Shown here piece after piece: positions 15,061 through 59,900 of a stretch of 64,000 nt of DNA. Origin of the DNA: Macrostomum hystrix (taxonomy: Eukaryota > Animalia > Platyhelminthes); assembly GCA_950097015.1 (NCBI GenBank), contig CATNEN010000003.1, positions 11,594,001 through 11,658,000 of the forward strand. Reading direction: 5' to 3'. Positions within the stretch are counted from its first letter, which is position 1. Each line of letters opens with the position of its first letter. Made by a program: the position numbers and the translations under genes. Below the pieces are notes generated by a model. The model was not told where the DNA came from. It saw nothing but the letters and a program-made list of their open reading frames with translations, and ran no database searches.

Positions 15061-15140
15061 TAGATATTATTAATCTAATTTGATCCTCTTTATCGTGTTT
15101 ATCCATTTCCCAATATCCCCATTTCCCTCGCTAATCGAAG

Positions 15141-22650: not shown

Positions 22651-22685
<35 letters not shown>

Positions 22686-22753
22686 AGCGCCGTGCTCAGT
22701 CTCAGCAGTCAGACCCAATCACAGTAGTTGATCTCACAGCCGATTCAGATTAA
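21963..22753 (+). CDS. PIAS: PIAS paralog B exon 4: SP-RING and SIMs; full protein ~584 aa
   Basis: SLRCPLSRSRIELPIRSNDCRHIQCFDARSYLVMNERKPTWKCPCCD is an SP-RING. SIMs VIELDDDE and terminal ITVVDLTADSD*. The acceptor is at the same position as in paralog A (ag|GTCTTTGTCG). Confidence 0.92.
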
Positions 22754-30352: not shown

Positions 30353-30679
30353 CTCAAACATTCATCCATTCTTACACATCACGATTGTTTGCCATGAAAT
30401 TTGTGGGGCTGAAGTGCCTTTTTCTATGGAAACAGAGCCCGGGAAAGGCGGGTCCAAAGTTGTCTGGGTTTGAGGTCTGGATTTTGGGAAATATTTACAT
30501 TTTAATATTAAGGAATATTCGAAGGATTTAGGAAAATATTTTGGTATTCGACATGAGACTCCGAATCCAAGTTTGGGATCTGATTAGGAAAGCCTATTGA
30601 GTGTTAACTTTGGGATCACATGGTTTGCTCTTGGCATTGTGATTAACAGTGAAAAGAAATTCACATAGCACTGGCTTTG

Positions 30680-33600
30680 CCTGAAGTTCGATGGTCACTG
30701 GCCTGAAGTTCGATAGTCGCTGGTCTTAAGTTCGATAGTCGCTGGCCTGAGGAGGTATGACTCACTTACAAAGCACGAGCCTGAAGTTCGATGGTCACTG
30801 GCCTGAAGTTCGATGGTCACTGGCCTGAAGTTCGATAGTCACTGGCCTGAAGTTCGATGGTCACTGGCCTGAAGTTCGATAGTCGCTGGTCTTAAGTTCG
30901 ATAGTCGCTGGCCTGAGGAGGTATGACTCACTTACAAAGCACGAGCCTGAAGTTCGATGGTCACTGGCCTGAAGTTCGATGGTCACTGGCCAGAAGTTCG
31001 ATGGTCACTGGCCTGAAGTTCGATGGTCACTGGCCTGAAGTTCAATAGTTATTGGCCTGAAGTTCGATGGTCACTGGCCTGAGGTTCGATGGTCACTGGC
31101 CTGAAGTTCGATAGTCAGTGGCCTGAAGTTTGAGGGTCACTGGCCTGAAGTTCGAGGGTCACTGGCCTGAAGTTCGAGGGTCACTGGCCTGCAGTTCGAG
31201 GGTCACTAGCCTGCAGTTAAATAGACACTTGCTTGAGAAGGTAGGACTCACCCACAAAGCACGAGCCTGACTTCGACCCTCGACTGGTCTTAAGTTCGAT
31301 AGTCACTGGCCTGAAGTTCGATGGTCACTGGCCTGAAGTTCGATGGTCACTGGCCTGACGTTCGATGGTCACTGGCCTGAGGAGTTAGGACTCACTCACA
31401 AAGCACGAGCCTGAAGTTCGATAGTCAGTGGCCTGAAGTTCGATAGTCAGTGGCCTGAAGTTCGATAGTCAGTGGCCTGAAGTTCGATAGTCAGTGGCCT
31501 GAAGTTCGATAGCCAGTGGCCTGAAGTTCGAGGGTCACTGGCCTGAAGTTCGAGGGTCACTTGCCTGCAGTTAAATAGACACTTGCTTGAGAAGGTAGGA
31601 CTCACTCACAAAGCACGAGCCTGAAGTTCGATGGTCACTGGCCTGAGGAGGCATGACTCACCCACAAAGCACGAGCCTGACTTCGACCCTCGACTGGTCT
31701 TAAGATCGATAGTCACTGGCCTGAAGTTCGATGGTCACTGGCCTGAAGTTCGATAGTCGCTGGTCTTAAGTTCGATAGTCGCTGGCCTGAGGAGGTAGGA
31801 CTCACTCACAAAGCACGAGCCTGAAGTTCGATGGTCACTGGCCTGAAGTTCGATGGTCACTGGCCTGAAGTTCGATGGTCACTGGCCTGAAGTTCGATGG
31901 TCACTGGCCTGAAGTTCAATAGTTATTGGCCTGAAGTTCGATGGTCACTGGCCTGAGGTTCGATGGTCACTGGCCTGAAGTTCGATAGTCAGTGGCCTGA
32001 AGTTCGAGGGTCACTGGCCTGAAGTTCGAGGGTCACTGGCCTGAAGTTCGAGGGTCACTGGCCTGCAGTTCGAGGGTCACTAGCCTGCAGTTAAATAGAC
32101 ACTTGCTTGAGAAGGTAGGACTCACCCACAAAGCACGAGCCTGACTTCGACCCTCGACTGGTCTTAAGTTCGATAGTCACTGGCCTGAAGTTCGATGGTC
32201 ACTGGCCTGAAGTTCAATAGTTATTGGCCTGAAGTTCGATGGTCACTGGCCTGAGGTTCGATGGTCACTGGCCTGAAGTTCGATAGTCAGTGGCCTGAAG
32301 TTCGAGGGTCACTGGCCTGAAGTTCGAGGGTCACTGGCCTGAAGTTCGAGGGTCACTGGCCTGCAGTTCGAGGGTCACTAGCCTGCAGTTAAATAGACAC
32401 TTGCTTGAGAAGGTAGGACTCACCCACAAAGCACGAGCCTGACTTCGACCCTCGACTGGTCTTAAGTTCGATAGTCACTGGCCTGAAGTTCGATGGTCAC
32501 TGGCCTGAAGTTCGATGGTCACTGGCCTGACGTTCGATGGTCACTGGCCTGAGGAGTTAGGACTCACTCACAAAGCACGAGCCTGAAGTTCGATAGTCAG
32601 TGGCCTGAAGTTCGATAGTCAGTGGCCTGAAGTTCGATAGTCAGTGGCCTGAAGTTCGATAGCCAGTGGCCTGAAGTTCGAGGGTCACTGGCCTGAAGTT
32701 CGAGGGTCACTTGCCTGCAGTTAAATAGACACTTGCTTGAGAAGGTAGGACTCACTCACAAAGCACGAGCCTGAAGTTCGATGGTCACTGGCCTGAGGAG
32801 GTATGACTCACCCACAAAGCACGAGCCTGACTTCGACCCTCGACTGGTCTTAAGATCGATAGTCACTGGCCTGAAGTTCGATGGTCACTGACCTGAAGTT
32901 CGATAGTCGCTGGGCTTAAGTTCGATAGTCGCTGGCCTGAGGAGGTATGACTCACTTACAAAGCACGAGCCTGAAGTTCGATGGTCACTGGCCTGAAGTT
33001 CGATGGTCACTGGCCAGAAGTTCGATGGTCACTGGCCTGAAGTTCGATGGTCACTGGCCTGAAGTTCAATAGTTATTGGCCTGAAGTTCGATGGTCACTG
33101 GCCTGAGGAGGTAGGACACACTCACAAAGCACGAGCCTGACTTCGATGGTTACTGGCCTGAAGTTCGACAGTTATTGGCCTGAAGTTCGATGGTCACTGG
33201 CCTGAGGAGGTAGGACTCACTCACAAAGCACGAGCCTAAAGTTCGATGGTCACTGGCCTGAGGTTCGATGGTCACTGGCCTGAGGAGGTAGGACACACTC
33301 ACAAAGCACGAGCCTGACTTCGATGGTTACTGGCCTGAAGTTCGATAGTCACTGGCCTGAGGAGGTAGGACTCACTCACAAAGCACGAGCCTAAAGTTCG
33401 ATGGTCACTGGCCTGAGGAGGTAAGACACACTCACAAAGCACGAGCCTGAAGTTCGATACTCACTGGCCTGAACAGGTACGACTCACTCACAAAGCACGA
33501 GCCTGACTTCGATGGTCACTGGCCTGAAGTTCGATAGTCACTGGCCTGAAGTTCGATAGTCACTGGCCTGAAGTTCGATAGTCACTGGCCTGAAGTTCGA

Positions 33601-36092
33601 TAGTCACTGGCCTGAAGTTCGATAGTCACTGGCCTGAAGTTCGATAGTCACTGGCCTGAAGTTCGATAGTCACTGGCCTAAAGTTCGATAGTCACTGGCC
33701 TGAAGTTCGATAGTCACTGGCCTGAACAGTTACGACTCACTCACAAAGCACGAGCCTGACTTCGATGGTCACTGGCCTGAAGTTCGATAGTCACTGGCCT
33801 GAAGTTCCATGGTCACTGGCCTGAGGAGGTAGGACTCACTCACAAAGCACGAGCCTGAAGTTCGATAGTCACTGGCCTGAGGTTCGATTGTCACTGGCCT
33901 GAACAGTTACGACTCACTCACAAAGCACGAGCCTGAAGTTCGATAGTCACTGGCCTGAAGTTCGATAGTCACTGGCCTAAAGTTCGATAGTCACTGGCCT
34001 GAACAGTTACGACTCACTCACAAAGCACGAGCCTGAAGTTCGATAGTCACTGGCCTGAAGTTCGATAGTCACTGGCCTGAAGTTCGATAGTCACTGGCCT
34101 GAAGTTCCATGGTCACTGGCCTGAGGAGGTAGGACTCACTCACAAAGCACGAGCCTGACTTCGATGGTTACTGGCCTGAAGTTCGATAGTCACTGGCCTG
34201 AAGTTCAATAGTTATTGGCCTGAAGTTCGATGGTCACTGGCCTGAGGAGGTAGGACTCACTCACAAAGCACGAGCCTGAAGTTCGATAGTCACTGGCCTG
34301 AGGTTCGATTGTCACTGGCCTGAACAGTTACGACTCACTCACAAAGCACGAGCCTGAAGTTCGATAGTCACTGGCCTGAAGTTCGATAGTCACTGGCCTA
34401 AAGTTCGATAGTCACTGGCCTGAACAGTTACGACTCACTCACAAAGCACGAGCCTGAAGTTCGATAGTCACTGGCCTGAAGTTCGATAGTCACTGGCCTG
34501 AAGTTCGAGGGTCACTGGCCTGAAGTTCGAGGGTCACTTGCCTGCAGTTAAATAGACACTTGCTTGAGAAGGTAGGACTCACTCACAAAGCACGAGCCTG
34601 AAGTTCGATGGTCACTGGCCTGAGGAGGTATGACTCACCCACAAAGCACGAGCCTGACTTCGACCCTCGACTGGTCTTAAGATCGATAGTCACTGGCCTG
34701 AAGTTCGATGGTCACTGGCCTGAAGTTCGATAGTCGCTGGTCTTAAGTTCGATAGTCGCTGGCCTGAGGAGGTATGACTCACTTACAAAGCACGAGCCTG
34801 AAGTTCGATGGTCACTGGCCAGAAGTTCGATGGTCACTGGCCAGAAGTTCGATGGTCACTGGCCTGAAGTTCGATGGTCACTGGCCTGAAGTTCAATAGT
34901 TATTGGCCTGAAGTTCGATGGTCACTGGCCTGAGGAGGTAGGACTCACTCACAAAGCACGAGCCTGACTTCGATGGTTACTGGCCTGAAGTTCGACAGTT
35001 ATTGGCCTGAAGTTCGATGGTCACTGGCCTGAGGAGGTAGGACTCACTCACAAAGCACGAGCCTAAAGTTCGATGGTCACTGGCCTGAGGTTCGATGGTC
35101 ACTGGCCTGAGGAGGTAGGACACACTCACAAAGCACGAGCCTGACTTCGATGGTTACTGGCCTGAAGTTCGATAGTCACTGGCCTGAGGAGGTAGGACTC
35201 ACTCACAAAGCACGAGCCTAAAGTTCGATGGTCACTGGCCTGAGGAGGTAAGACACACTCACAAAGCACGAGCCTGAAGTTCGATACTCACTGGCCTGAA
35301 CAGGTACGACTCACTCACAAAGCACGAGCCTGACTTCGATGGTCACTGGCCTGAAGTTCGATAGTCACTGGCCTGAAGTTCGATAGTCACTGGCCTGAAG
35401 TTCGATAGTCACTGGCCTGAAGTTCGATAGTCACTGGCCTGAAGTTCGATAGTCACTGGCCTGAAGTTCGATAGTCACTGGCCTAAAGTTCGATAGTCAC
35501 TGGCCTGAAGTTCGATAGTCACTGGCCTGAACAGTTACGACTCACTCACAAAGCACGAGCCTGACTTCGATGGTCACTGGCCTGAAGTTCGATAGTCACT
35601 GGCCTGAGGAGGTAGGACTCACTCACAAAGCACGAGCCTGAAGTTCGATAGTCACTGGCCTGAGGTTCGATTGTCACTGGCCTGAACAGTTACGACTCAC
35701 TCACAAAGCACGAGCCTGAAGTTCGATAGTCACTGGCCTGAAGTTCGATAGTCACTGGCCTAAAGTTCGATAGTCACTGGCCTGAACAGTTACGACTCAC
35801 TCACAAAGCACGAGCCTGAAGTTCGATAGTCACTGGCCAGAAGTTCGATAGTCACTGGCCTGAAGTTCGATAGTCACTGGCCTGAAGTTCCATGGTCACT
35901 GGCCTGAGGAGGTAGGACTCACTCACAAAGCATGAGCCTGACTTCGATGGTTACTGGCCTGAAGTTCGATAGTCACTGGCCTGAAGTTCGATGGTCACTG
36001 GCCTGAGGAGGTAGGACTCACTCACAATGCACGAGCCTAAAGTTCGATGGTCACTGCCCTAAATTTTGATAGTCACTGTCCTGAAGTTCGAT
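30680..36092. repeat. Compound satellite: 22-bp unit (gcctgaagttcgatggtcactg) interspersed with a 34-bp unit (gcctgaggaggtaggactcactcacaaagcacga); ankyrin-derived, with higher-order duplications
   Basis: Visible array with roughly 40 copies of the 34-mer by eye. The 34-mer aligns to the coding strand of the ankyrin exon at 41894-43500. Confidence 0.93.
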
Positions 36093-36256: not shown

Positions 36257-37806
36257 TCACAAACACACACAGCACCTGCAGCATTTTGATCCACAACAAG
36301 TTTTTCTTTCTTTGTATTCAAGTTGACGCCGACTCGTATACTCAAATGAATATTCGAATTGGTTTTGGCGATCTTCACCTTGACTGCTCAGCCTCTCAAT
36401 CTTCAGCTGCAGCCACCCCGGCAGGCGGCACAGCTCGTGAGTGATTCTTCTGCGCAGCCACCGCAGCAGCTCCAGATCGCCGCAGATTGCCGCAGCAACC
36501 AGCAGCTCTTGCTCATCAGCATCCTCCGTCTGAGCCACATCCCAGATCCAGTCCTGATCGCTCCCGTCTCCTGCTCCTGTCAGATCATTGCGAAGAGCCC
36601 GCAGCAGAGCGTCAAAGTTCAGGTAGAAGAATGTTCCGTAGTTCTTCATCTGCAGCGGAAAGCAGTCGGTAATGACTTCGTGCTCAATCGGCAGCTTCGG
36701 TCGCTTGTCAAACTCGAAGCAGAATTTCCAGGCGGAGTCTCGGCTCCTCAGGTGCTGCCACACAAAGTCCTCAGTTGCCTCACTCGCCGACCTCTCAGCT
36801 CCCCAATCGATGCCTCTGCTCGCACTGAACGGCCAGCAGTCGCTCACAACTCTCGCTGCACTGAGTCGGTCGCCGAACTTCAGGCAGGCCAGCGCTCTGA
36901 GAGACTGCCGCGCTGATCGGGCGCAGTCTGGCAGTTTGTTGATCAGCTCTGCGAGACTCTCTCGGGACTGCTGGCTGCGGTCTCCATCGGACAGACGAAG
37001 CACCGACTCTCTCACGATGTCGTAGATCTCGTGGAACTCGCATGTCTTGGCTTCTGACACGGGTCTGACTTGAAGAGTCGGCAGGATGAGGAACGGGTGG
37101 AAGTGGAATCGGCCAGAGTCGGTGACGGGTCGCAGACTGTCCTCGAACTGCAGCAGCAGCTGAGGCAGCTCAGCCATGGCGTCTCTCAATGCACCGGCTG
37201 CCCGATTCAACGCTTCGCTCACTCTCTCAGCTGATGTGGGCGACTTCAAGCCTTTCAGGTACACAGCGGCATCGCTCAGGAAGAAGTGCTCGAGGATCCG
37301 ACCATTAGGTTTTTCTGATCTGCAGCCGCTCTCCACACCGTCAAGCAGCATCTGCAGCGAGCGTCTCGTGAGACTCACGAGATTCTCCGGCTTCCACTGC
37401 TCAGCCGGTGTCTCCTCCAGCATTCGGAACGTGACGGTCTTTGCGTGATAGGACTTGAAGCCGACGTTTGAGATCTTCTTCTTCAGCAGCCACTTGAGTG
37501 TGACGAACAGCTGGCCTTGCAGAGTGCTGAGACTCCGCAGCAGTCGCCTCTCCAGGAAGCTGCTGCTCACTCGGAGCTGCTGGCCCCCCATTCCGGGAGG
37601 AGCTGCGTGCACCACGTGACAGGGCGATGAGGCAGAGGTGAGGTCTCGCTGGAGTGACTGCAGCACGGACTGGGGGATGTTGGAGTTGGAGAGTCTTGGT
37701 GGCTGTAGCGGCGCGATGGGAGGGTAGCGACAGAGGCGACGGGCGGTGACTTCGTCCACAGCCGGTCTCAGGGTGGAGCCATTTAGATTCCAGGCTGGGT
37801 TGGAGG
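36257..37806 (-). CDS. Ankyrin-cGLR gene exon 3: C-terminal part of the Mab-21/cGAS-like NTase domain, helical domain, Cys-rich CaaX tail
   Basis: Acceptor tttctccag|CC at 37807/37806, phase 1. Mab-21 signatures: VDEVTA (third acidic residue position), [28 protein letters not shown]-x3-NL, LEHFFL. Ends [13 protein letters not shown]. Confidence 0.88.
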
Positions 37807-39145
37807 CTGGAGAAATTGGAAATGCGAGAAATATGGAAAATGCTATCAATTTTCCATTGGATAGACACAAAATATTTCTCTGTAATCTAATCAGGAAAAA
37901 ATAGTGCAAAGATGGTTTGTAGCTGCGATATTTGAAAATTTAGTGCAGACTAGAAACTTTGCCCCCTACGGAGGGGAGCACGTGCACGATAATTTTCAAT
38001 TCTTCCTTGCTTCTTTAGATTCTTATGGGTATTTTTCCTGAGCACTGTATACAGCTCTTCAGTCCATGTATTGGGGAGGTCACCAGCTCACTCAAATTTC
38101 TACTGTAACCTTCAGCTGGCTGAACTGAATAAATACGAGGTTATGATTCTAGCTCTTGGACAAGCATCGTTTCCTCAGGCTGAGATTCGAACTCCCGGCG
38201 TCTCTGCCAGAAGCTTCCAAGCTGTACTAAAAATATTTATTGCATAAGAGTGGATGCATTCAACTTAGAAAGTGAAAGTTTACTTAAGAGGGACCACGAA
38301 AAATGATATAATTAAGTTAGAACTCCTTGAGTGTCAAGTTACAATGTGACTATTGCAAAGCTGCCATCATTTGGTCAGTGTCGCAGAAATGGGCCGAATG
38401 GGTTAATCTTCAGATGTAGCCAATCGGCGGGGTTTTCCTGCCAACTTAAAATAGGAAAATTTTCCTATCTACTGGATAACTAGCTTCTATATTGCTTGTA
38501 AGAATGGGCTGTTCGGAGTATTGTTGAAAATCAATGGACATGTACTGGCATAATTAAAGAATCACAGAGAAAGAATTTTGTAAAAACGGCAAAAGAATAT
38601 AATAGATTAGAAATCACAGAAATTTGCAATGACGCTTCCAAAAGCTGTGTACAACGGTTCAGTCCATGGACTGGGGAGGTCACCTCAGAAACTGTAATTT
38701 TAACTCGTATACGTTTGCTTCTACCCGTTTTACTGGCTGCTGAATTGGAAACTTTCAGCTTTTAGGAACTTTCGTTTTGCCGTTCAAAGAGGAATTTCCC
38801 AAATCAGGTTCACGACTTATTACTTTAATTTTACACACGTGACTGTGAAAGTATTGCGAGCCTAAGAAACAAAGACAAACTTTGCTTCTCTTCACTGAGT
38901 ACACTGCGCGATGAGCGCTAAGCCTCTGTTTGGTTCGCAGAAGAAGTGAAATCGGCTATAAAAACAAACTTTATATTTTTGCTTAGAACTTTCTTGCTCT
39001 GGCTCTGGATTTCAAACCTGGACTGAGCATTTGTTTGTTTCCCTGTTTGTTGTTTGCTTTAGAAAGCCAAAGAGGATCAGCAGGCCAAACACATGCTCAA
39101 TTCTTGTCCCAGCCATCCCGACAGTCTCTGGCAGGAAATTCTCAC

Positions 39146-39495
39146 CGAATCCGGAGCTCAGGATGTGGCCATTGCTGAGCTCCACTGTCTGAGCAGCCTC
39201 CACTCGGTCGCACTCGCACACATCTCTCGGGTGAATCGGCCTTCCTGGAATCAGCTGAATAACATCGATGTCAGAGTCGATGTCAGTTCCGCCATCCAGA
39301 GAGACCAGGCTGTTGCCCCAGGCCTCAGAGAAGCTGCCCACAGCGAACCAGCCGTCATCGTTCATTCTCTTCCTGAGAACATCCTGCAAGACGTCAGCCA
39401 CAGCGATCTGCAAGGCGGCTCTGAAGTCCACGAATCCCGACTGAGAGAGCTTGGAGTGCAGCTGCTGGCTCAGCTCTGCGTCGCTGGGTGCGGCT
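39146..39495 (-). CDS. Ankyrin-cGLR gene exon 2: nucleotidyltransferase catalytic motif
   Basis: Acceptor cacccttcag|A at 39496/39495. Encodes AVGSFSEAWGNSLVSLDGGTDIDSDIDVI (hGS...[DE]h[DE]h motif of the cGAS/DncV/Mab-21 NTases). Donor G|GTGAGA at 39146/39145 is in frame with exon 3. Confidence 0.85.
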
Positions 39496-39690
39496 CTGAA
39501 GGGTGAGAGGAGGCGGCATTGCTGAGTTTCAGTGAGGCTGGGAGGCTCTGAAGGGTGAGAGGAGGCGGCAGTGCTGAGTTTCAGTGAGGCTGGGAGGCTC
39601 TGAAGGGTGAGAGGAGGCGGCAGTGCTGAGTTTCAGTGAGGCTGGGAGGCTCTGAAGGGTGAGAGGAGGCGGCAGTGCTGAGTTTCTGCA
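39496..39690. repeat. 52-bp unit, about 3.7 copies, duplicating the exon-2 splice acceptor
   Basis: gaagggtgagaggaggcggca... recurs at 39498, 39550, 39602 and 39654. Confidence 0.9.
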
Positions 39691-39869
39691 CTGCAAAAGT
39701 GAAAAAAAAATTATATTAAATAATTAAGAAAATTTTGAAAATATTTTGTAGGCTGTGTTTTTGCGAATGATACACTACGGAGTCAAAAGGTGTCACTTTC
39801 AAAAAACCCAAATCCATAATCCAATATTTAATTCCTGCAATATATAATCCCAAATCTGTTTTTAAAAAT

Positions 39870-40912
39870 CCCAAACTTATAATATTGCATTCCAAACCTG
39901 TTCTATTGCATCCCAAAACTTTAATATTGCTTCCCTGACATGTAATCTAGAATTCAACGCATGAAAAAATTGCATCCCAAGCTGTAATATTGCATCCCAA
40001 TCTGTAATATTGCATCCCAATCTGTAATATTGCATCCCAATCTGTAATATTGTATCCCAATCTGTAATATTGCATCCCAATCTGTAATATTGTATCACAA
40101 GCTGTAATATTGCATCCCAATCTGTAATATTGCATCCCAATCTGTAATATTGCATCCCAATCTGTAATATTGCATCCCAATCTGTAATATTGCATCCCAA
40201 TCTGTAATATTGCATCCCAAGCTGTAATATTGCATCCCAAAACTGTAATATTGTTTCCTGACATGTAATATTGAACGGGACACATGTAATATTGCATCTC
40301 AAACCTGTAATATTGCATCCCAAAACTGTAATATTGCATCACAAGCTGTACTATTGCATCCCAAAACTGTAATATTGTTTCCTGACATGTAATATTGAAC
40401 GGGACACATGTAATATTGCATCTCAAACCTGTAATATTGCATCCCAAAACTGTACTATTGCATCCCAAGCTGTAATATTGCATCCCAAGCTGTAATATTG
40501 TATCACAAGCTGTTCTATTGCATCCCAAAACTGTAATATTGCTTCCCTGACATGTAATATTGAATCGGACACATGTAATATTGCATCCCAATCTGTAATA
40601 TTGCATCCCAATCTGTAATATTGTATCACAAGCTGTAATATTGCATCCCAATCTGTAATATTGCATCCCAATCTGTAATATTGCATCTCAAACCTGTAAT
40701 ATTGCATCCCAAGCTGTAATATTGCATCCCAATCTGTAATATTGCATCCCAATCTGTAATATTGCATCCCAATCTGTAATATTGCATCCCAATCTGTAAT
40801 ATTGCATCCCAATCTGTAATATTGCATCACAAGCTGTAATATTGCATCCCAAGCTGTAATATTGCATCTCAAACCTGTAATATTGCATCCCAAGCTGTAA
40901 TATTGCATCCCA
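39870..40912. repeat. 20-bp minisatellite (tgcatcccaatctgtaatat) in intron 1 of the ankyrin-cGLR gene
   Basis: Visible array. It explains the MQYYRLGCNITDWDAILQ ORFs. Confidence 0.95.
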
Positions 40913-41893
40913 AGGAATAACATTGAATCTCTAACCAAGGACCACTGGAATACGTCGTTCTAGTATAGTAGTCCTTGTCCCTAACCTGTAGTATTACATC
41001 CCAAACCTGTAATTTTTTCCTCCAAAATCAAATCCCACATTCATAAACTGAGACTTAGGATAAATTCTTAAACTGGAGCCCATTCCGCTGTATTGGCAAC
41101 TAAGCATGTTGAACAAGTTGAAAGATTATTAGCTCGTATTCAATTAAATAAAAACTGAAATTCTTTAAAAAATGTTTTTTCACGAGGTTTTTACAGATTT
41201 TTACAAGGGGATAGCAGAGCACCTTTTTCTTCACGGATTTTGTGACTGTGTCCAACTGGAGGTGGATCAACTCAAGGCTTATCAAGGCTCATCTATTAGC
41301 ATTAGTTTCCGTATTTCTTCGATTTCTTTCAAGCTGAATTTGTCAACATTCGATTCGACATTTTTCATTTTTCAATTCTGTAGCAAAAATATGTTAAGCT
41401 CTTGAGAACGAAACCGCTCGGAAATTAGACTTTTGTCTTCTTTGTTTAATAATCAAATTAATTAAATACATTAATAAAATAAGTTTCTTATATTTATCTT
41501 TAGCCTTACGATTTATTTATCAGTACATACAACATACCCTGCTAATGTTACGAGTAATAATGGTACGCTCGTATGAAGATCAACTTTTCAGGACACAAGC
41601 TTATATAGTTCATAGCAGCAACATATGTAATAATACCAAAAGAAGAGCTTTGGATCTGCTTTAAATAAGAACGGTTACCATTAAAATTTTAGGGTGAAAA
41701 ACTGAAGTGTATCTCCGTAGTGTATACATTTATTTTTAATCTACAATAACTGACTGACGCACAATCAGTTTGCAACATCGGTTCTCAGATTTCGAATCTA
41801 ATAGCTCAGAGCACGCTGGCTGCGAATTGATTTTCAAAATGTCTCTGAAAACGGATTGCTCAGGTCAGTTTTACAGGAAACAGGAGCTCCTAC

Positions 41894-43866
41894 CTGTTCT
41901 GCTTCTCAGGCAAAGGCGCGGAGGATCCACGGCTCAGCAGGTCAACCACTCGGTCATGGCCGACTTTCGTGGCGATTCGCAGAGCAGCTTCCAGCAAGTC
42001 CGGGCGCTGAACGACTTTCATGAGTGACTCGACAACACGGAGGTGGCCGTTCTGTGATGCAATGTAGAGAGGTGAGGAACCATCGAATGCTTGAAGATTG
42101 ACGTCGGCTCGTGCTTTGATGAGTGAGTCGACCACCTCCTTATGGCCATTTTGTGATGCAATGTACAGAGGTGAGCAGCCATCGACTCCTTGAAGATTGA
42201 CGTCGGCTCGTGCATTGATGAGTGATTCGACCACCTCCTTATGGCCATTTTGTGATGCAATGTAGAGAGGTGAGGAGCCAGTTTTTCTTTGAAGATTGAC
42301 GTCGGCTCGTGCTTTGATGAGTGAGTCCACCACCTCCTTATGGCCATTTTGTGATGCAATGTAGAGAGGTGAGCAGCCCTCGAATGCTTGAAGATTGACG
42401 TCGGCTCGTGCTTTGATGAGTGAGTCCACCACCTCCTTATGGCCATTTTGTGATGCAATGTAGAGAGGTGAGGAGCCCTCGAATGCTTGAAGATTGACGT
42501 CGGCTCGTGCTTTGATGAGTGAGTCCACCACCTCCTTATGGCCATTGCAGGATGCAATGTAGAGAGGTGAGTAGCCAGTATTTGCTTGAAGATTGACGTC
42601 GGCTCGTGCTTTGATGAGTGATTCGACCACCTCCTTATGGCCATTTTGTGATGCAATGTAGAGAGGTGAGGAGCCAGCTTTTCTTTGAAGATTGACGTCG
42701 GCTCGTGCTTTGATGAGTGATTCGACCACCTCCTTATGGCCATTTTGTGATGCAATGTAGAGAGGTGAGGAGCCAGCTTTTCTTTGAAGATTGACGTCGG
42801 CTCGTGCTTTGATGAGTGATTCGACCACCTCCTTATGGCCATTTTGTGATGCAATGTAGAGAGGTGAGGAGCCATCGACTTCTTGAAGATTGACGTCGGC
42901 TCGTGCTTTGATGAGTGATTCGACCACCTCCTTATGGCCATTTTGTGATGCAATGTAGAGAGGTGAGCAGCCATCGACTTCTTGAAGATTGACGTCGGCT
43001 CGTGCATTGATGAGTGATTCGACCACCTCCTTATGGCCATTTTGTGATGCAATGTAGAGAGGTGAGGAGCCAGTTTTTCTTTGAAGATTGACGTCGGCTC
43101 GTGCATTGATGAGTGATTCGACCACCTCCTTATGGCCTTGCTGTGATGCAATGTAGAGAGGTGAGCAGCCAGTATTTCTTTGAAGATTGACGTCGGCTCG
43201 TGCATTGATGAGTGATTCGACCACCTCCTTATGGCCATTTTGTGATGCAATGTAGAGAGGTGAGGAGCCATCGACTTCTTGAAGATTGACGTCGGCTCGT
43301 GCATTGATGAGTGAGTCGACCACCTCCTTATGGCCTGCAAGTGATGCAATGAAGAGAGGTGAGCAGCCAGTATTTGTTTGAAGATTGACGTCGGCTCGTG
43401 CATTGATGAGTGAGTCGACCACCTCCTTATGGCCTGCAAGTGATGCAATGAAGAGAGGTGAGCAGCCAGTATTTGTTTGAAGATTGACGTCGGCTCGTGC
43501 TTTGATGAGTGATTTCACCAGTCGGAGGTGACCATATGCAGATGCAATCCACAATGCCGTCTCCCCTCTCCAGTTCTGCTTGTCTACATCCGCAATGGCT
43601 CGGATGAGTCTCACGAGAATTTCATGCCTTCCTAATCGGCAAGCGAGCATTGCTGGAGTATAAAATGAGCCTGCAAAGGCGATGAAGGCATCGAGGCTCC
43701 CGCCGCTGACAATGAAACGCTCAACGACCTCCACTCGGTCATCTCTGATGGCTGCCAGCAGCTCCTCGTCGGTGAGTTCTTCTGCGTCTTCTCGCTGCTG
43801 TGAGGAATGAACTGAGTTCATCAGGTACACCAGGACAGCCGTGAGTATTCTCAGCAAGGGAAACAT
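41894..43866 (-). CDS. Ankyrin-cGLR gene exon 1: ~18 ankyrin repeats (15 near-identical 33-aa/99-bp units); read unspliced it is a 658-aa ankyrin-only ORF ending at 41890
   Basis: Repeated G-x-SPLYIAS-x-x-GHKEVV-x-SLI-x-ARADVNLQ. The ORF stop lies inside a donor, AAC AG|GTAGGA (41894/41893, phase 2), which joins in frame to 39495. Confidence 0.9.
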
Positions 43867-43996: not shown

Positions 43997-46900
43997 TCAT
44001 TGGCTGCTGAGCTGCTCAGAGAAGAGAAGACGAGAAGAGAAGAGGAGAAGAGAAGATAAGAGAAAAGAAGAGAAGAGAAGAAGAGAAGAGAAGAGAAGAG
44101 GAGAGAAGAGGAGAAGAGGAGAGAAGAGAAGAGAAGAGAAGAGAAGAAGAGAAGAGAAGAGAAGAGAAGAGAAGAGAAGAGAAGAAGAGAAGAGGAGAGA
44201 AGAGGAGAAGAGAAGAGAAGAGGAGAAGAGGAGAGGAGAGAAGAGAAGAGAAGAGAAGAGAAGAAGAGAAGAGAAGAGAAGAGAAGAGAAAAGAAAAGAA
44301 GAGGAGAAGAGAAAAGGAGAGAAGAGGAGAAGAGAAGAGAAGAGAAGAGAAGAGGAGAAGAGAAGAGAAGAGAAGAAGAGAAGAGAAGAGGAGAAGAGAA
44401 GAGAAGAGGAGAAGAGAAGAGAAGAGAACAGAAGAGAAGAGAAGAGAAGAAGAGAAGAGAAGAGAAGAGAAAAGAAAAGAAGAGAAGAAGAGAAGAGAAG
44501 AGAAGAGGAGAAGAGGAGAGGAGAGAAGAGAAGAGAAGAGAAGAGAAGAAGAGAAGAGAAGAGAAGAGAAGAGAAGAGAAGAAGAGAAGAGAAGAGAAGA
44601 GAAAAGAAGAGAAGAGAAGAGAAAAGAAGAGAAGAGAAGAGAAGAGAAGAGAAGAGAAGAAGAGAAGAGGAGAGAAGAGAAGAAGAGAAGAGAAGAGAAG
44701 AGAAGAGAAGAGGAGAGGAGAAGAGAAGAGAAGAGGAGAAGAGGAGAAGAGAAGAGAAGAGAAGAGAAGAAGAGAAGAGAAGAGAAGAGAAGAGAAGAGA
44801 AGAAGAGAAGAGAAGAGGATAAGAGAAGAGAAGAGAAAAGAAGAGAAGAGAAGAAGAGAAGAGGAGAGAAGAGGAGAAGAGAAGAGAAGAGGAGAAGAGG
44901 AGAAGAGAAGAGAAGAGAAGAGAAGAGGAGAAGAGAAGAGAAGAGAAAAGAAGAGAAGAGAAGAAGAGAAGAGAAGAGAAGAGGAGAAGAGAAGAGGAGA
45001 AGAGAAGAGGAGAAGAGAAGAGAAGAGGAGAAGAGAATAGAAGAGAAAAGAAGAGAAGAGAAGAAGAGAAGAGGAGAAGAGAAGAGAAGAGAAGAGGAGA
45101 AGAGGAGAGGAGAGAAGAGAAGAGAAAAGAAAAGAAGAGGAGAAGAGAAAAGGAGAGAAGAGGAGAAGAGAAGAGAAGAGAAGAAGAGAAGAGAAGATAA
45201 GAGAAGAGAAGAGGAGAAGAGAAGAGAAGAGGAGAAGAGAAGAGAAGAGGAGAAGAGAGGAGAAGAGAAGAGAAGAGAAGAGAAGAGAAGAAGAGAAGAG
45301 AAGAGAAGAGAAGAGGAGAAGAGAAGAGAAGAGAAGGGAAGAGAAGAGAAGAAGAGAAGAGAAGAGAAGAGAAGAGAAGAGAAGAGAAGAGAAGAGAAGA
45401 GAAGAGGAGAAGAGAAGAGAAGAGAAGGGAAGAGAAGAGAAGAAGAGAAGAGAAGAGAAGAGAAGAGAAGAAGAGAAGAGAAGAGAAGAGAAGAGAAGAG
45501 AAGAGAAGAAGAGAAGAGGAGAGAAGAGGAGAAGAGAAGAGAAGAGGAGAAGAGGAGAGGAGAGAAGAGAAGAGAAGAGAAGAGAAGAAGAGAAGAGAAG
45601 AGAAGAGAAGAGAAAAGAAAAGAAGAGGAGAAGAGAAAAGGAGAGAAGAGGAGAAGAGAAGAGAAGAGAAGAGAAGAGGAGAAGAGAAGAGAAGAGAAGA
45701 AGAGAAGAGAAGAGGAGAAGAGAAGAGAAGAGGAGAAGAGAAGAGAAGAGAACAGAAGAGAAGAGAAGAGAAGAAGAGAAGAGAAGAGGAGAAGAGAAGA
45801 GAAGAGAAAAGAAGAGAAGAGAAGAAGAGAAGAGGAGAGAAGAGGAGAAGAGAAGAGAAGAGGAGAAGAGGAGAAGAGAAGAGAAGAGGAGAAGAGGAGA
45901 AGAGAAGAGAAGAGAAGAGAAGAAGAGAAGAGAAGAGGAGAAGAGAAGAGAAGAGAAGAAGAGAAGAGAAGAGAAGAGGAGAAGAGAAGAGGAGAAGAGA
46001 AGAGGAGAAGAGAAGAGAAGAGGAGAAGAGAATAGAAGAGAAAAGAAGAGAAGAGAAGAAGAGAAGAGAAGAGAAGAGAAGAGGAGAAGAGGAGAGGAGA
46101 GAAGAGAAGAGAAAAGAAAAGAAGAGGAGAAGAGAAAAGGAGAGAAGAGGAGAAGAGAAGAGAAGAGAAGAGAAGAGGAGAAGAGAAGAGAAGAGAAGAA
46201 GAGAAGAGAAGAGAAGAGAAGAGAAGAGGAGAAGAGAAGAGAAGAGGAGAAGAGAAGAGAAGAGGAGAAGAGAAGAGAAGAGAACAGAAGAGAAGAGAAG
46301 AGAAGAAGAGAAGAGAAGAGAAGAGAAGAGAAGAGAAGAGAAGAGAAGAGGATAAGAGAAGAGAAGAGAAGAGAAGAGAAGAAGAGAAGAGAAGAGAAGA
46401 GAAGAGAAGAGAAGAGAAGAGGAGAAGAGAAGAGAAGAAGAGACGAGACGAGAAGAGAAGAGGAGAAGAGGAGAAGAGGAGAAGAGAAGAAAGGAAAAGA
46501 AGAGGAGAAGAGGAGTGATTCTTCTGCGCAGCCGCCGCAGCAGCTCCAGATCTCCGCAGATCGCCGCAGCAACCAGCAGCTCCTGCTTATCCGCATCCTC
46601 CGTCTGAGCCACATCCCGTATCCAGTCCTGATCGCTCCCGTCTCCTGCTGCTGTCAGATAATTGCGAAGAGCCCGCAGCAGAGCGTCAAAGTTCAGGTAG
46701 AAGTAGTTGCCGTAGTTCTTCATCTGAGACAGAAAGCAGCCGGCAAAGACTTCGTGTTCAATCGGCAGCTTCGGTCGCTTGTAAAACTCGAAGCAAAATT
46801 TCCAGGCGGAGTCTCGGCTCCTCAGGTGCTGCCACACAAAGTCCGCAGTGGCCTCACTTGCCGACCTCTCAGCCCCCCAATCGATGCCTCTGCTCGCACT

Positions 46901-47965
46901 GAACGGCCCGCAGTCGCTCACAACTCTCCGGCTTCCGAGATTCTCCGGCTTCCACTGCTCAGCCGGTGTCTCCTCCAGCATTCGGAACGTGACGGTCTTT
47001 GCGTGATAGGACTTGAAGCCGACGTTTGAGATCTTCTTCTTCAGCAGCCACTTGAGTGTGACGAACAGCTGGCCTTGCACAGTGCTGAGACTCCGCAGCA
47101 GTCGCCTCTCCAGGAAGCTGCTGCTCACTCGGAGCTGCTGGCCTCCATTCCGGGAGGAGCTGCGTGCACCACGTGACAGGGCGATGAGGCAGAGGTGAGG
47201 TCTCGCCTGAGCGACTGCAGCACGGACTGGGGGATGTTGGAGTTGGAGACTCTTGGTGGCGGCGGGCGTCGACTCGGTCCACAGCCGGTCTCAGGGCCCA
47301 GCCTCTTTGAGTCCAGGCTGGGTTGGAGGCTGGAGAAATGGGAAATGCGAGAAACATTGCAAATGCCATCAGATTTCAATTAGAAACAAAACTAATTTTC
47401 AATTGTATTTCATGTCTGTTGTCTGATGTAAAGAAATAGAAATCAAACAAAATTTAGAAACTTTTGCCCTTTCTCAAAGAGGGACAAAGAGCAACTCGAA
47501 TGAATCGTCTGGGCTCCCCGAAGATGGGCAACCATTGCTAGTTAAATAACAGTTTATAGCTAATGTGCAGGATTCATGCAAAGTGGCACGAGCAACAACT
47601 CCTGTCAATGAGTGATTTAAGTGCAACAAAGAATATGATATTAGATTTTGGCGTATAAAAATCAATAAGTACAATGAATGAATATAGTATCATTATTCAC
47701 TGAGTTCACTGAGCGATGAGCACTAAGCCTCTGTTTGGTTCCCAGAGGAAGCGCGCCGAAAGAAAAATCACACTTTATTTGCGAAATTTCTTGCTCTGGC
47801 TCGGATTTTTAAATCTGGACTGAACATTTGCTTGTTTTCCTTGTTTGTTGTTTGCTTTAGAAAGCCAAAGAAGATGAGCAAGCCAAACATATGCTCAATT
47901 CTTGTCCCAGCCATTCCGACAGTCTCTGGCAGGAAATTCTCACCGAATCCGGAGCTCAGGATGTG
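43997..47965 (-). pseudogene. Degenerate tandem paralog of the cGLR (Mab-21) gene
   Basis: 46515-47329 is highly similar to 36440-37806 but has a ~520-bp internal deletion, small frameshifting indels and the (GAAGA)n interruption. 47700-47965 matches 38890-39166 but keeps only ~22 bp of the catalytic exon, so the GS/DxD motif is lost. Confidence 0.85.
44020..46514. repeat. ~2.5 kb (GAAGA)n polypurine microsatellite
   Basis: Almost pure A/G sequence built from gaaga and gagaa units. Confidence 0.97.
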
Positions 47966-53952: not shown

Positions 53953-56900
53953 GTTCGAGATTGGGTCAGTTAGAGATTGGGTCAGTTAGACATTGGGTCA
54001 GTTAGAGATTGGGTCAGTTAGACATTGGGTCAGTTAGAGATTGAGTCAGTTAGAGATTGGGTCAGTTAGAGATTGGGTCAGTTAGAGATTGTATCAGTTA
54101 GAGATTGTATCAGTTAGAGATTGTATCAGTTAGAGATTGGGTCAGTTAGAGATTGGGTCAGTTAGACATTGGGTCAGTTAGAGATTGAGTCAGTTAGAGA
54201 TTGTATCAGTTAGAGATTGTATCAGTTAGAGATTGTATCAGTTAGAGATTGTATCAGTTAGAGATTGTATCAGTTAGAGATTGTATCAGTTAGAGATTGG
54301 GTCAGTTAGAGATTGTATCAGTTAGAGATTGAGTCAGTTAGAGATTGAGTCAGTTAGAGATTGGGTCAGTTAGAGATTGTATCAGTTAGAGATTGTATCA
54401 GTTAGAGATTGTATCAGTTAGAGATTGTATCAGTTAGAGATTGTATCAGTTCGAGATTGTATCAGTTAGAGATTGTATCAGTTCGAGATTGTATCAGTTA
54501 GAGATTGTATCAGTTAGAGATTGTATCAGTTAGAGATTGTATCAGTTAGAGATTGGGTCAGTTAGAGATTGGGTCAGTTAGACATTGGGTCAGTTAGAGA
54601 TTGAGTCAGTTAGAGATTGTATCAGTTAGAGATTGTATCAGTTAGAGATTGTATCAGTTAGAGATTGTATCAGTTCGAGATTGTATCAGTTAGAGATTGG
54701 GTCAGTTAGACATTGGGTCAGTTAGAGATTGAGTCAGTTAGAGATTGAGTCAGTTAGAGATTGGGTCAGTTAGACATTGGGTCAGTTAGAGATTGAGTCA
54801 GTTAGAGATTGTATCAGTTAGAGATTGTATCAGTTAGAGATTGTATCAGTTAGAGATTGTATCAGTTAGAGATTGGGTCAGTTAGACATTGGGTCAGTTA
54901 GAGATTGTATCAGTTAGAGATTGTATCAGTTCGAGATTGTATCAGTTAGAGATTGTATCAGTTCGAGATTGTATCAGTTAGAGATTGTATCAGTTAGAGA
55001 TTGTATCAGTTAGAGATTGTATCAGTTAGAGATTGGGTCAGTTAGAGATTGGGTCAGTTAGACATTGGGTCAGTTAGAGATTGAGTCAGTTAGAGATTGT
55101 ATCAGTTAGAGATTGTATCAGTTAGAGATTGTATCAGTTAGAGATTGTATCAGTTCGAGATTGTATCAGTTAGAGATTGGGTCAGTTAGACATTGGGTCA
55201 GTTAGAGATTGAGTCAGTTAGAGATTGAGTCAGTTAGAGATTGGGTCAGTTCGAGATTGGGTCAGTTAGACATTGGGTCAGTTAGAGATTGAGTCAGTTA
55301 GAGATTGGGTCAGTTAGACATTGGGTCAGTTAGACATTGGGTCAGTTAGAGATTGGGTCAGTTAGAGATTGGGTCAGTTAGACATTGGGTCAGTTAGAGA
55401 TTGAGTCAGTTAGAGATTGAGTCAGTTAGAGATTGGGTCAGTTCGAGATTGGGTCAGTTAGACATTGGGTCAGTTAGAGATTGAGTCAGTTAGAGATTGG
55501 GTCAGTTAGACATTGGGTCAGTTAGACATTGGGTCAGTTAGAGATTGGGTCAGTTAGAGATTGGGTCAGTTAGACATTGGGTCAGTTAGAGATTGAGTCA
55601 GTTAGAGATTGAGTCAGTTAGAGATTGGGTCAGTTAGAGATTGGGTCAGTTAGAGATTGGGTCAGTTAGACATTGGGTCAGTTAGAGATTGAGTCAGTTA
55701 GAGATTGAGTCAGTTAGAGATTGTATCAGTTCGAGATTGGGTCAGTTAGACATTGGGTCAGTTAGAGATTGGGTCAGTTAGAGATTGAGTCAGTTAGAGA
55801 TTGGGTCAGTTAGAGATTGGGTCAGTTAGAGATTGAGTCAGTTAGACATTGGGTCAGTTAGAGATTGTATCAGTTAGAGATTGGGTCAGTTAGAGATTGG
55901 GTCAGTTAGAGATTGGGTCAGTTAGAGATTGAGTCAGTTAGAGATTGTATCAGTTCGAGATTGGGTCAGTTAGAGATTGGGTCAGTTAGAAATTGGGTCA
56001 GTTAGAGATTGAGTCAGTTAGAGATTGTATCAGTTAGAGATTGTATCAGTTAGAGATTGTATCAGTTAGAGATTGTATCAGTTAGAGATTGTATCAGTTA
56101 GAGATTGTATCAGTTAGAGATTGGGTCAGTTAGAGGATGGGTCAGTTAGAGATTGTATCAGTTAGACATTGGGTCAGTTAGAGATTGAGTCAGTTAGAGA
56201 TTGAGTCAGTTAGAGATTGGGTCAGTTAGAGATTGGGTCAGTTAGAGATTGAGTCAGTTAGACATTGGGTCAGTTAGAGATTGTATCAGTTAGAGATTGG
56301 GTCAGTTAGAGATTGGGTCAGTTAGAGATTGGGTCAGTTAGAGATTGAGTCAGTTAGAGATTGTATCAGTTCGAGATTGGGTCAGTTAGACATTGGGTCA
56401 GTTAGAGATTGGGTCAGTTAGAGATTGAGTCAGTTAGAGATTGTATCAGTTAGACATTGGGTCAGTTAGAGATTGAGTCAGTTAGAGATTGAGTCAGTTA
56501 GAGATTGTATCAGTTAGACATTGGGTCAGTTAGAGATTGAGTCAGTTAGAGATTGAGTCAGTTAGAGATTGTATCAGTTAGAGATTGTATCAGTTAGAGA
56601 TTGTATCAGTTCGAGATTGTATCAGTTAGAGATTGGGTCAGTTAGACATTGGGTCAGTTAGAGATTGAGTCAGTTAGAGATTGAGTCAGTTAGAGATTGG
56701 GTCAGTTCGAGATTGGGTCAGTTAGACATTGGGTCAGTTAGAGATTGAGTCAGTTAGAGATTGGGTCAGTTAGACATTGGGTCAGTTAGACATTGGGTCA
56801 GTTAGAGATTGGGTCAGTTAGAGATTGGGTCAGTTAGACATTGGGTCAGTTAGAGATTGAGTCAGTTAGAGATTGAGTCAGTTAGAGATTGGGTCAGTTC

Positions 56901-59900
56901 GAGATTGGGTCAGTTAGACATTGGGTCAGTTAGAGATTGAGTCAGTTAGAGATTGGGTCAGTTAGACATTGGGTCAGTTAGACATTGGGTCAGTTAGAGA
57001 TTGGGTCAGTTAGAGATTGGGTCAGTTAGACATTGGGTCAGTTAGAGATTGAGTCAGTTAGAGATTGAGTCAGTTAGAGATTGGGTCAGTTAGAGATTGG
57101 GTCAGTTAGAGATTGGGTCAGTTAGACATTGGGTCAGTTAGAGATTGAGTCAGTTAGAGATTGAGTCAGTTAGAGATTGTATCAGTTCGAGATTGGGTCA
57201 GTTAGACATTGGGTCAGTTAGAGATTGGGTCAGTTAGAGATTGAGTCAGTTAGAGATTGGGTCAGTTAGAGATTGGGTCAGTTAGAGATTGAGTCAGTTA
57301 GACATTGGGTCAGTTAGAGATTGTATCAGTTAGAGATTGGGTCAGTTAGAGATTGGGTCAGTTAGAGATTGGGTCAGTTAGAGATTGAGTCAGTTAGAGA
57401 TTGTATCAGTTCGAGATTGGGTCAGTTAGAGATTGGGTCAGTTAGAAATTGGGTCAGTTAGAGATTGAGTCAGTTAGAGATTGTATCAGTTAGAGATTGT
57501 ATCAGTTAGAGATTGTATCAGTTAGAGATTGTATCAGTTAGAGATTGTATCAGTTAGAGATTGTATCAGTTAGAGATTGGGTCAGTTAGAGGATGGGTCA
57601 GTTAGAGATTGTATCAGTTAGACATTGGGTCAGTTAGAGATTGAGTCAGTTAGAGATTGAGTCAGTTAGAGATTGGGTCAGTTAGAGATTGGGTCAGTTA
57701 GAGATTGAGTCAGTTAGACATTGGGTCAGTTAGAGATTGTATCAGTTAGAGATTGGGTCAGTTAGAGATTGGGTCAGTTAGAGATTGGGTCAGTTAGAGA
57801 TTGAGTCAGTTAGAGATTGTATCAGTTCGAGATTGGGTCAGTTAGACATTGGGTCAGTTAGAGATTGGGTCAGTTAGAGATTGAGTCAGTTAGAGATTGT
57901 ATCAGTTAGACATTGGGTCAGTTAGAGATTGAGTCAGTTAGAGATTGAGTCAGTTAGAGATTGTATCAGTTAGACATTGGGTCAGTTAGAGATTGAGTCA
58001 GTTAGAGATTGAGTCAGTTAGAGATTGTATCAGTTAGACATTGGGTCAGTTAGAGATTGTATCAGTTAGACATTGGGTCAGTTAGAGATTGTATCAGTTA
58101 GAGATTGTATCAGTTCGAGATTGGGTCAGTTAGACATTGGGTCAGTTAGAGATTGGGTCAGTTAGAGATTGGGTCAGTTAGACATTGGGTCAGTTAGAGA
58201 TTGGGTCAGTTAGAGATTGAGTCAGTTAGAGATTGAGTCAGTTAGAGATTGGGTCAGTTAGAGATTGGGTCAGTTAGAGATTGAGTCAGTTAGACATTGG
58301 GTCAGTTAGAGATTGTATCAGTTAGAGATTGGGTCAGTTAGAGATTGGGTCAGTTAGAGATTGGGTCAGTTAGAGATTGAGTCAGTTAGAGATTGTATCA
58401 GTTCGAGATTGGGTCAGTTAGACATTGGGTCAGTTAGAGATTGGGTCAGTTAGAGATTGAGTCAGTTAGAGATTGTATCAGTTAGACATTGGGTCAGTTA
58501 GAGATTGAGTCAGTTAGAGATTGAGTCAGTTAGAGATTGTATCAGTTAGACATTGGGTCAGTTAGAGATTGAGTCAGTTAGAGATTGAGTCAGTTAGAGA
58601 TTGTATCAGTTAGACATTGGGTCAGTTAGAGATTGTATCAGTTAGACATTGGGTCAGTTAGAGATTGTATCAGTTAGAGATTGTATCAGTTCGAGATTGG
58701 GTCAGTTAGACATTGGGTCAGTTAGAGATTGGGTCAGTTAGAGATTGAGTCAGTTAGAGATTGTATCAGTTAGACATTGGGTCAGTTAGAGATTGAGTCA
58801 GTTAGAGATTGAGTCAGTTAGAGATTGTATCAGTTAGACATTGGGTCAGTTAGAGATTGAGTCAGTTAGAGATTGAGTCAGTTAGAGATTGAGTCAGTTA
58901 GAGATTGAGTCAGTTAGAGATTGAGTCAGTTAGAGATTGTATCAGTTCGAGATTGGGTCAGTTAGAGATTGTATCAGTTCGAGATTGGGTCAGTTAGAGA
59001 TTGGGTCAGTTAGAGATTGAGTCAGTTAGAGATTGAGTCAGTTAGAGTTTGAGTCAGTTAGAGTTTGAGTCAGTTAGAGATTGGGTCAGTTAGAGATTGG
59101 GTCAGTTAGAGATTGTATCAGTTCGAGATTGGGTCAGTTAGAGATTGAGTCAGTTAGAGATTGTATCAGTTCGAGATTGGGTCAGTTAGAGATTGAGTCA
59201 GTTAGACATTGGGTCAGTTAGAGATTGTATCAGTTAGAGATTGGGTCAGTTAGAGATTGGGTCAGTTAGAGATTGGGTCAGTTAGAGATTGAGTCAGTTA
59301 GAGATTGTATCAGTTCGAGATTGGGTCAGTTAGACATTGGGTCAGTTAGAGATTGGGTCAGTTAGAGATTGAGTCAGTTAGAGATTGTATCAGTTAGACA
59401 TTGGGTCAGTTAGAGATTGAGTCAGTTAGAGATTGAGTCAGTTAGAGATTGTATCAGTTAGACATTGGGTCAGTTAGAGATTGAGTCAGTTAGAGATTGA
59501 GTCAGTTAGAGATTGTATCAGTTAGACATTGGGTCAGTTAGAGATTGTATCAGTTAGACATTGGGTCAGTTAGAGATTGTATCAGTTAGAGATTGTATCA
59601 GTTCGAGATTGGGTCAGTTAGACATTGGGTCAGTTAGAGATTGGGTCAGTTAGAGATTGGGTCAGTTAGAGATTGGGTCAGTTAGAGATTGGGTCAGTTA
59701 GAGATTGAGTCAGTTAGAGATTGAGTCAGTTAGAGATTGGGTCAGTTAGAGATTGGGTCAGTTAGAGATTGAGTCAGTTAGACATTGGGTCAGTTAGAGA
59801 TTGTATCAGTTAGAGATTGGGTCAGTTAGAGATTGGGTCAGTTAGAGATTGGGTCAGTTAGAGATTGAGTCAGTTAGAGATTGTATCAGTTCGAGATTGG

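Follow-up and report, generated by a model that had tools for sequence, protein, structure and literature searches.

A spliced gene of Macrostomum hystrix that joins an ankyrin array to a cGAS-like nucleotidyltransferase, and its large family

About 3000 cGAS-like receptors (cGLRs) have been catalogued in animals (Li et al. 2023, bioRxiv 10.1101/2023.02.22.529553, PMC9980059); 87% have no additional domain, and ankyrin or TPR repeats occur in some. According to this survey, most platyhelminths have only Mab21-like proteins, and its domain table lists accessions of the flatworm Macrostomum lignano with Ank_2 matches (Li et al. 2023, PMC9980059). Here, we describe a gene of Macrostomum hystrix that encodes an ankyrin array followed by a cGAS-like nucleotidyltransferase (NTase). 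It lies in a stretch of 64,000 nucleotides (nt), called the window throughout (GenBank contig CATNEN010000003.1, positions 11,594,001 to 11,658,000; contig C3 of the 220 Mb assembly that was searched for relatives). The ankyrin-cGLR fusion was already catalogued in 2023 and the gene is a further member of that family. The original prediction, made from the letters of the window, had called the gene hidden; as a kind it is not, since the fusion is modelled in public annotations of M. lignano and listed in Tables S2 and S3 of Li et al. 2023. Because the kind is known, the present gene is of value for annotation and as a possible test case rather than as a discovery. No publication dealing specifically with the Macrostomum expansion was found in the literature.

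The closest described proteins are the M. lignano ankyrin-cGLRs (PAA65091.1 and PAA88786.1, our P0002 and P0008). They have the same order of ankyrin array, linker, NTase and helical C-terminal domain and the same motifs, with identities of 56-70% in the ankyrin part, 57-67% over exon 2 and 51-72% over exon 3. They differ in that they come from another species, have another number of repeats and have neither the hydrophobic N terminus nor the CaaX tail described below. Five M. lignano enzyme domains were included in a screen of 140 proteins (Li et al. 2023, PMC9980059; Tables S2 and S3), with constructs including PAA86972.1, PAA45980.1 and PAA68676.1, and by sequence all five plainly belong to the present family.

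The solved structures are more distant. Cv-cGLR1 (8gjw), Sp-cGLR1 (8gjy), the Tribolium cGLR (7lt2), cGAS and human MB21D2 (7lt1) have the bilobal NTase fold in common with a relative of our gene (P0007, Z 14.9-19.0). The solved animal cGLRs share the GS, DxD and D motifs with the present family at an identity of only 14-20%; they are without an ankyrin array, whereas the present family adds a helical C-terminal domain of about 230 residues. Repeat-fused cGLRs of a coral likewise have a repeat module attached to the cGLR core, but they belong to another phylum and number three proteins, whereas the fusion is present at 12 of 12 sampled loci of a flatworm family of more than 100 copies. The two fusions probably arose independently. 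By analogy only, RNase L and the NLR/LRR receptors also couple a solenoid to a signalling or effector domain, in families that expand and vary at the binding surface. Their output domain is not homologous, and the ankyrin part of RNase L binds the signal, whereas here the array precedes the enzyme that would make it. Particular to the present copy are a tail of the lipid-anchor type, a hydrophobic N terminus and a clean three-exon structure; the genome is distinguished by how large the family is and by its one candidate STING.

Gene structure and splicing

Three minus-strand open reading frames (ORFs), 43866-41894, 39495-39146 and 37806-36257, join in frame via canonical GT..AG sites. The spliced coding length is 1973 + 350 + 1550 = 3873 nt, or 1290 codons plus the stop (1291 with the stop included), and the codons split by the two junctions encode R (exon 1/2) and A (exon 2/3). 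The original prediction had joined the same three ORFs to a protein of 1290 amino acids, and all of its coordinates were confirmed. The donor sequence of intron 1 (AAC AG/GTAGGAGCTCCT, the slash marking the border) is identical in six close copies, the gene and five paralogues. Exon 2 is preceded by ...CCCTTCAG directly before its start at 39495 and ends with ATTCG/GTGAGA at 39146; exon 3 follows ...TTTCTCCAG and starts at 37806. A 52-nt repeat (39492-39686, 3.8 copies, 99% alike) duplicates the acceptor of exon 2 four times. The frame is open only from the last of these acceptors, the one at 39495; those at +52 and +104 shift the frame, and that at +156 meets a stop at 39635-39633. Contigs of low depth cover 39565-39646 within this repeat zone.

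Evidence for the junctions came from contigs (Logan) of four small public runs of one organism, in which about one third of the sampled words of the stretch are present. The library type of the runs is not on record; depth confined to exons and GT..AG joints are what RNA would give. Indeed, both enzyme exons are covered at high depth, intron 2 is mostly empty and the borders of exon 2 coincide exactly with contig ends. The joint 37806/39146 is contained in run X3, where 1339 letters are skipped with CT..AC on the plus strand, that is GT..AG on the strand of the gene, and loose ends at 37807 in runs X4 and X5 match the final letters of exon 2. At the other border, the contig over 39375-39498 runs on with 16 to 152 non-fitting letters in all four runs. 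The 30-letter consensus of these loose ends at 39498 occurs a single time in the window, at 41897-41926, beside the end of exon 1 at 41894; no shuffled sequence matched. The three letters between 41894 and 41897 are compatible with both sides, which gives the junction 41894/39495. This junction is based on loose ends matched back to 41897-41926 and not on a listed joint, the contigs having been aligned over 37400-39940. Contigs of the four runs thus support 41894/39495 as well as 39146/37806. Since they carry letters of sister copies (see below), what they establish is the splicing of a near-identical subfamily rather than of this one locus; a twin gene at a distance of 43 kb is identical to it in exon 2 and in the junction sequence.

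These contigs also bear on the question whether the ankyrin ORF and the NTase are two separate genes, the former ending at the TAG at 41890. The stop does lie at the donor, and an unspliced transcript would give an ankyrin-only protein of 658 residues. However, an ankyrin ORF that always ends at 41890, named at the outset as the refuting case, is contradicted by the contigs that join 41894 to 39495, and in relatives and paralogues a single protein or open frame spans the two parts. We therefore regard two separate genes as extremely improbable. The locus is a spliced three-exon gene of the Macrostomum type, with an ankyrin array and a cGAS-like NTase.

Within intron 2, some 45-85 nt at 38590-38676 stand at a contig depth of 390-760 in all four runs, with unlike loose ends on both sides. 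A similar motif recurs near 38080. This stretch is probably a dispersed repeat present in many transcripts.

The predicted enzyme domain and the ankyrin array

The codons of the GS motif and of the D-I-D pair were read in exon 2 and that of the third catalytic Asp in exon 3 (Table 1). In an alignment of 68 sequences, each of the columns for G, S and the three Asp is conserved in 60-64 members (about 90%), and the gene has them all; the three Asp columns are also kept in 26 of 26 distant Mab-21 proteins of the alignment. Farther along exon 3, the motif at 37576-37547 and KSYHAKT presumably correspond to RLSFS..E and SSYHVKT of cGAS. Thus, every motif named in the original prediction (GS, SDIDV, the third acidic residue in VDEV, and KSYHxKT) is present.

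Family profiles and structural models point the same way. With its ankyrin part, the family profile retrieved ankyrin proteins only from the solved structures and was replaced by one of ankyrin-less members; this one matched only Sp-cGLR1 (8gjy, E 4.3e-5) and chains of cGAS (E 0.02-0.06). The relative P0023 passes Mab-21_C with 28.1 bits, and the distant P0092 and P0096 carry both Mab-21 (PF03281) and Mab-21_C. As proxies for the fold we used AlphaFold models of two natural M. lignano relatives (55-66% identical): P0149, with 752 residues, 63-66% identity to exons 2 and 3 and a pLDDT (predicted local distance difference test) of 89.8, and P0007, with 598 residues, no ankyrin part, 55% identity to exon 3 and a pLDDT of 92.6. 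Every top match of P0007 in Foldseek is cGAS or a cGLR, with cGAS first (E 2.3e-8). A search of P0149 with VIA-align, which is independent of Foldseek, was filled with designed ankyrin repeat proteins (DARPins), so the ankyrin-less relative was folded instead. For P0007, VIA-align gave Cv-cGLR1 of oyster (Z 19.0, root-mean-square deviation 3.4 over 254 residues), MB21D2 (Z 16.9), cGAS and Sp-cGLR1 (both Z 16.6), MAB21L1 (Z 15.1), the Tribolium cGLR (Z 14.9), MiD49 (Z 13.2), bacterial CD-NTases (Z about 12), OAS1 (Z 10.8) and terminal uridylyl transferases (Z 10.6 and below). On the models of these two relatives, the predicted cGAS-like NTase fold is borne out. Past the cGAS-like domain, the C-terminal 230 residues or so are mostly helical and family-specific and match no solved structure clearly, the best being SRP68/72 (Z 8.0). 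Pfam held no convincing family for the C-terminal half of exon 3 (DUF5691, E 0.009), and in the protein atlas this half gave only leads, with a score of 0.80, to mollusc Mab-21_C clusters.

A cGAS-like fold with its motifs could also belong to a non-enzymatic scaffold or adaptor like MAB21L1 or MiD49/MiD51, for which the ankyrin array would recruit partners. MAB21L1 and MiD49 match structurally well, as the Z scores show, and the text of Li et al. 2023 credits no activity to any of the five M. lignano domains screened. Active cGLRs nevertheless match better than the inactive relatives, and the gene, like about 90% of the aligned members, retains the GS and the three acidic residues, as selection for catalysis would lead one to expect. 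Moreover, many proteins of the screen were inactive, which the authors ascribe to a probable lack of the right ligand (Li et al. 2023, PMC9980059). A mere scaffold is therefore an unlikely explanation, and we prefer to regard the domain as a predicted enzyme.

Pfam searches were made exon by exon, with the NTase domain split between exons 2 and 3. On exon 1 they found Ank_2 (E 3.7e-137) and Ank (E 2.5e-135, 15 stretches). Sixteen units at an exact spacing of 33 residues, plus caps, amount to about 17 ankyrin repeats in all, and a tandem DNA period of 99 nt extends over 42044-43514. A short linker leads from the array to the NTase domain. The predicted ankyrin array is thus real, and so is the expandable, diversifying character that had been ascribed to it: between sampled copies its length varies from 768 to 2787 nt, and the variable residues cluster at the usual positions of the ankyrin binding surface. 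The framework codons of the repeat units are nearly identical at the DNA level. At eight repeat codons (2, 11-13, 15, 23, 24 and 31) there are 493 nonsynonymous versus 39 synonymous pairwise differences, at the remaining 25 codons 54 versus 106. The eight variable codons correspond to the positions at the hairpin tip and in the first helix that designers of ankyrin binders randomise. The ankyrin part of the P0149 model matches DARPins at Z 22. Judged from these codon patterns, the signature of diversification is real and fits a recognition module that is kept diverse.

A large family, its variable ends and a possible sensor function

Products of exon 2 and exon 3 match at least 144 and at least 87 places in the genome, respectively. 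In 12 of 12 paralogous loci sampled, with identities from 28% to 100%, ankyrin, exon-2-like and exon-3-like parts follow each other in the same order on one strand. Four of these loci have ankyrin and enzyme in a single open frame (452 to 950 residues), L021, L023 and L024 with the first enzyme part and L022 with the whole protein, which is evidence for the fusion free of any intron. With the exon-3 product as query, HMMER found 147 matches among 1.8 billion representative proteins; the named ones among the best are from M. lignano and up to about 70% identical. Among these matches and their cluster members, 90 relatives contain both exon-2-like and exon-3-like parts, and in about 45 of the 90 exactly one residue lies between the two, as predicted by the split codon at the exon 2/3 junction. 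In P0002, P0003, P0008 and P0009 of M. lignano, ankyrin, exon-2-like and exon-3-like parts are contiguous, and the linker ...RTIR-AAPSNDA... of P0003 aligns with ...EKQN-R-AAPSDAE... at the exon 1/2 junction here. Altogether, the family is very large and partly tandem; its ankyrin array varies in length and in binding-surface residues while the enzyme core is conserved. In Macrostomum, the ankyrin-fused form of the cGLRs has expanded to well over 100 copies.

The two ends of the protein vary more. The first 16 residues (MFPLLRILTAVLVYLM, 43866-43819) are hydrophobic, with a mean Kyte-Doolittle value of about 2. This feature is kept in four close copies, the gene and three paralogues, and is absent from the M. 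lignano relatives. A role as signal peptide or as anchor is possible. At the other end, 36298-36260 encode a Cys-rich tail with CVCL at the very end and five more Cys before it, which we take to be a CaaX box with Leu in the last place and further Cys nearby, resembling the lipid anchors of the RhoB type. None of the M. lignano family members listed has such an end. The sampled copy on contig C18 (L003/L016) also has the tail, its last 12 residues identical and the 20 before them different. In L006/L017 a shifted frame runs through the CaaX-coding DNA. Among close copies (L005-L010, L017) the tail varies by expansion of (GEDRQDQ)n, and some end in a basic KAKRLQRKRKS that resembles a nuclear localisation signal (NLS).

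A search of the genome with the profile of the STING ligand-binding domain gave one locus (G000:C2, about 9104529-9105035; L013 1501-2007, minus strand), so that the search for a STING homologue proposed with the original prediction yields a plausible single candidate of borderline score. Extended upstream, its open frame matches STING_LBD with 26.7 bits (E 4.2e-6) over 142 of 182 profile positions, its only meaningful Pfam match, and all 30 weak matches among solved structures are STING chains, aligned on AWNF..LRLILPKL (AWNFAFTFLRLILPKL versus AWNYYFGYLKLVLPRL). The signal exists only with this extension: cut at the first TTG, the ORF has no Pfam, solved-structure or database match. Judging by these matches, the locus is likely a divergent STING.

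As best explanation of the whole, we propose a spliced ankyrin-cGLR gene whose product is a sensor that makes a nucleotide second messenger when switched by a ligand, to which we give a probability of about 0.75. The protein would rest inactive until a ligand or partner binds via the ankyrin array, the back of the enzyme domain or both. Once bound, it would start to make a nucleotide second messenger, cyclic or linear, to be detected by a receptor, for example the one STING-like protein of the genome, and the CaaX tail of the present copy would anchor the sensor to a membrane. Enzymatic activity, ligand, product and immune role are only what we infer for this protein.

Several points weigh against this explanation. 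Exon 2 has no Pfam match in the search by exon, exon 3 reaches only 19.1 bits with Mab-21_C (PF20266; cut-off 24.1, E 0.0014), and the evidence for the cGAS-like fold comes from relatives and not from the gene's own protein. No activity is known for any family member; the active enzymes named by Li et al. 2023 (PMC9980059) are from insects, anemones, molluscs, hydras and corals, and the main text never mentions M. lignano. At the ends of the protein, the hydrophobic N terminus could be a signal sequence, which would clash with cytosolic prenylation, and the CaaX tail is kept in one other sampled copy only and is missing in most close copies. The STING-like ORF has no relatives in the protein database and its score is under the curated cut-off of 27. 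Finally, at 39424, 39290, 37475, 37655, 37693 and 37706 the contig letters are those of sister copies, and expression of the exact copy is therefore unproven.

The last point leads to a further alternative, in which the locus holds a recent and redundant duplicate with little or no expression. The transcripts would then stem from its sister copies, and the CaaX tail would have arisen by accident in a shifting, repeat-rich 3' end. Sister-copy letters are indeed found at every diagnostic site covered (at 39424, G replaces A in every contig and the window's own letter is in none), the twin has an identical exon 2, the locus lies among broken copies and satellites, and the tails of close copies differ by (GEDRQDQ)n expansion and a frameshift. 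On the other hand, all three exons are open with every splice site and motif intact, contigs of two runs break at 39289/39290, which hints at the presence of both letters, and the last 12 residues of the C18 tail are identical despite 20 differing ones before them. Logan contigs drop rare variants, so the absence of the copy's own letters proves nothing. We consider a silent duplicate improbable and retain the explanation as a functional sensor. Of the original prediction of a diversifying innate immune sensor, the gene model, the domains, the intact motifs and the diversity of the array stand, whereas the label of a hidden gene does not; the CaaX tail is present in the gene but, kept by only one other sampled copy, it is not general.

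One may go further and regard more than 100 ankyrin-cGLR genes as the main germline-encoded receptors of these flatworms. Their arrays, by a few hairpin and helix positions and by repeat number, would recognise different targets other than nucleic acids, their nucleotide messengers would converge on one divergent STING and interchangeable tails would set the compartments; the lipid-anchor tail here and the basic NLS-like tails in sister copies would then mean different compartments. Taken jointly, these assumptions are rather doubtful. In any case, an apparently intact copy with a lipid-anchor-type tail, in a genome that also has a candidate STING, is a concrete construct with which to ask what ankyrin-cGLRs sense, what they make and whether the array sets specificity.

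Features of the window

Table 1 Positions of the gene, its parts and neighbouring features in the window.
Feature	Position	Strand	Remarks
Broken extra exon-3 copy	46550..47327	-	tblastn; ORF 43997-47128; upstream of the gene
Purine-rich (AGAGA)n repeat, 2.5 kb	44018..46515	.	between broken copy and gene start
Exon 1	41894..43866	-	ATG at 43866; hydrophobic N terminus, N-cap, 16 ankyrin repeats, C-cap; phase 2 end
Intron 1 donor GTAGGA	41888..41893	-	exon 1 ends ...AACAG; TAG of the ORF (41892-41890) inside the donor
Intron 1, 2398 nt	39496..41893	-	holds 20-nt satellite 39868-40913 and 52-nt repeat 39492-39686
Exon 2, 350 nt	39146..39495	-	phase 2 in, phase 1 out; N-terminal helix and first part of NTase core
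GS (in GSFSEAWG)	39338-39333	-	codons read in exon 2
D-I-D (SDIDV)	39272-39264	-	codons read in exon 2
Intron 2, 1339 nt, GT..AG	37807..39145	-	splits the NTase domain
Exon 3	36257..37806	-	third Asp, KSYHAKT helix, helical C-terminal domain of about 230 residues, CaaX tail, CVCL-TGA
Third catalytic Asp (AVDEV)	37756-37754	-	codons read in exon 3
10-residue motif	37576-37547	-	exon 3
KSYHAKT helix	37456-37436	-	exon 3

Upstream of the gene, the broken exon-3 copy lacks residues 145-311, has frame shifts and a tail that runs into simple repeat, and is accompanied by neither an exon 1 nor an exon 2. A like pair of broken copy (L014 8635-9336) and (AGAGA)n repeat precedes the twin gene 43 kb away, which points to the duplication of a unit of 10 kb or more. 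On the downstream side, 30679-36092 is a satellite of 5.4 kb with a unit of 22 nt (GCCTGAAGTTCGATAGTCACTG) and higher-order units of 56, 78 and 100 nt. An origin of this satellite from ankyrin coding sequence is not supported by blastn with the ankyrin exon, which has no match there at E 1e-5.

Rfam has no match anywhere in the window. Two plus-strand ORFs, 15080-16468 and 22055-22753, encode a MIZ/SP-RING zinc finger of the type found in PIAS SUMO ligases (E 7e-21 and 2e-22). From 54000 to 64000, a constant strong GC skew of about +0.6 at 39% GC persists over ten kilobases, which suggests another long satellite.

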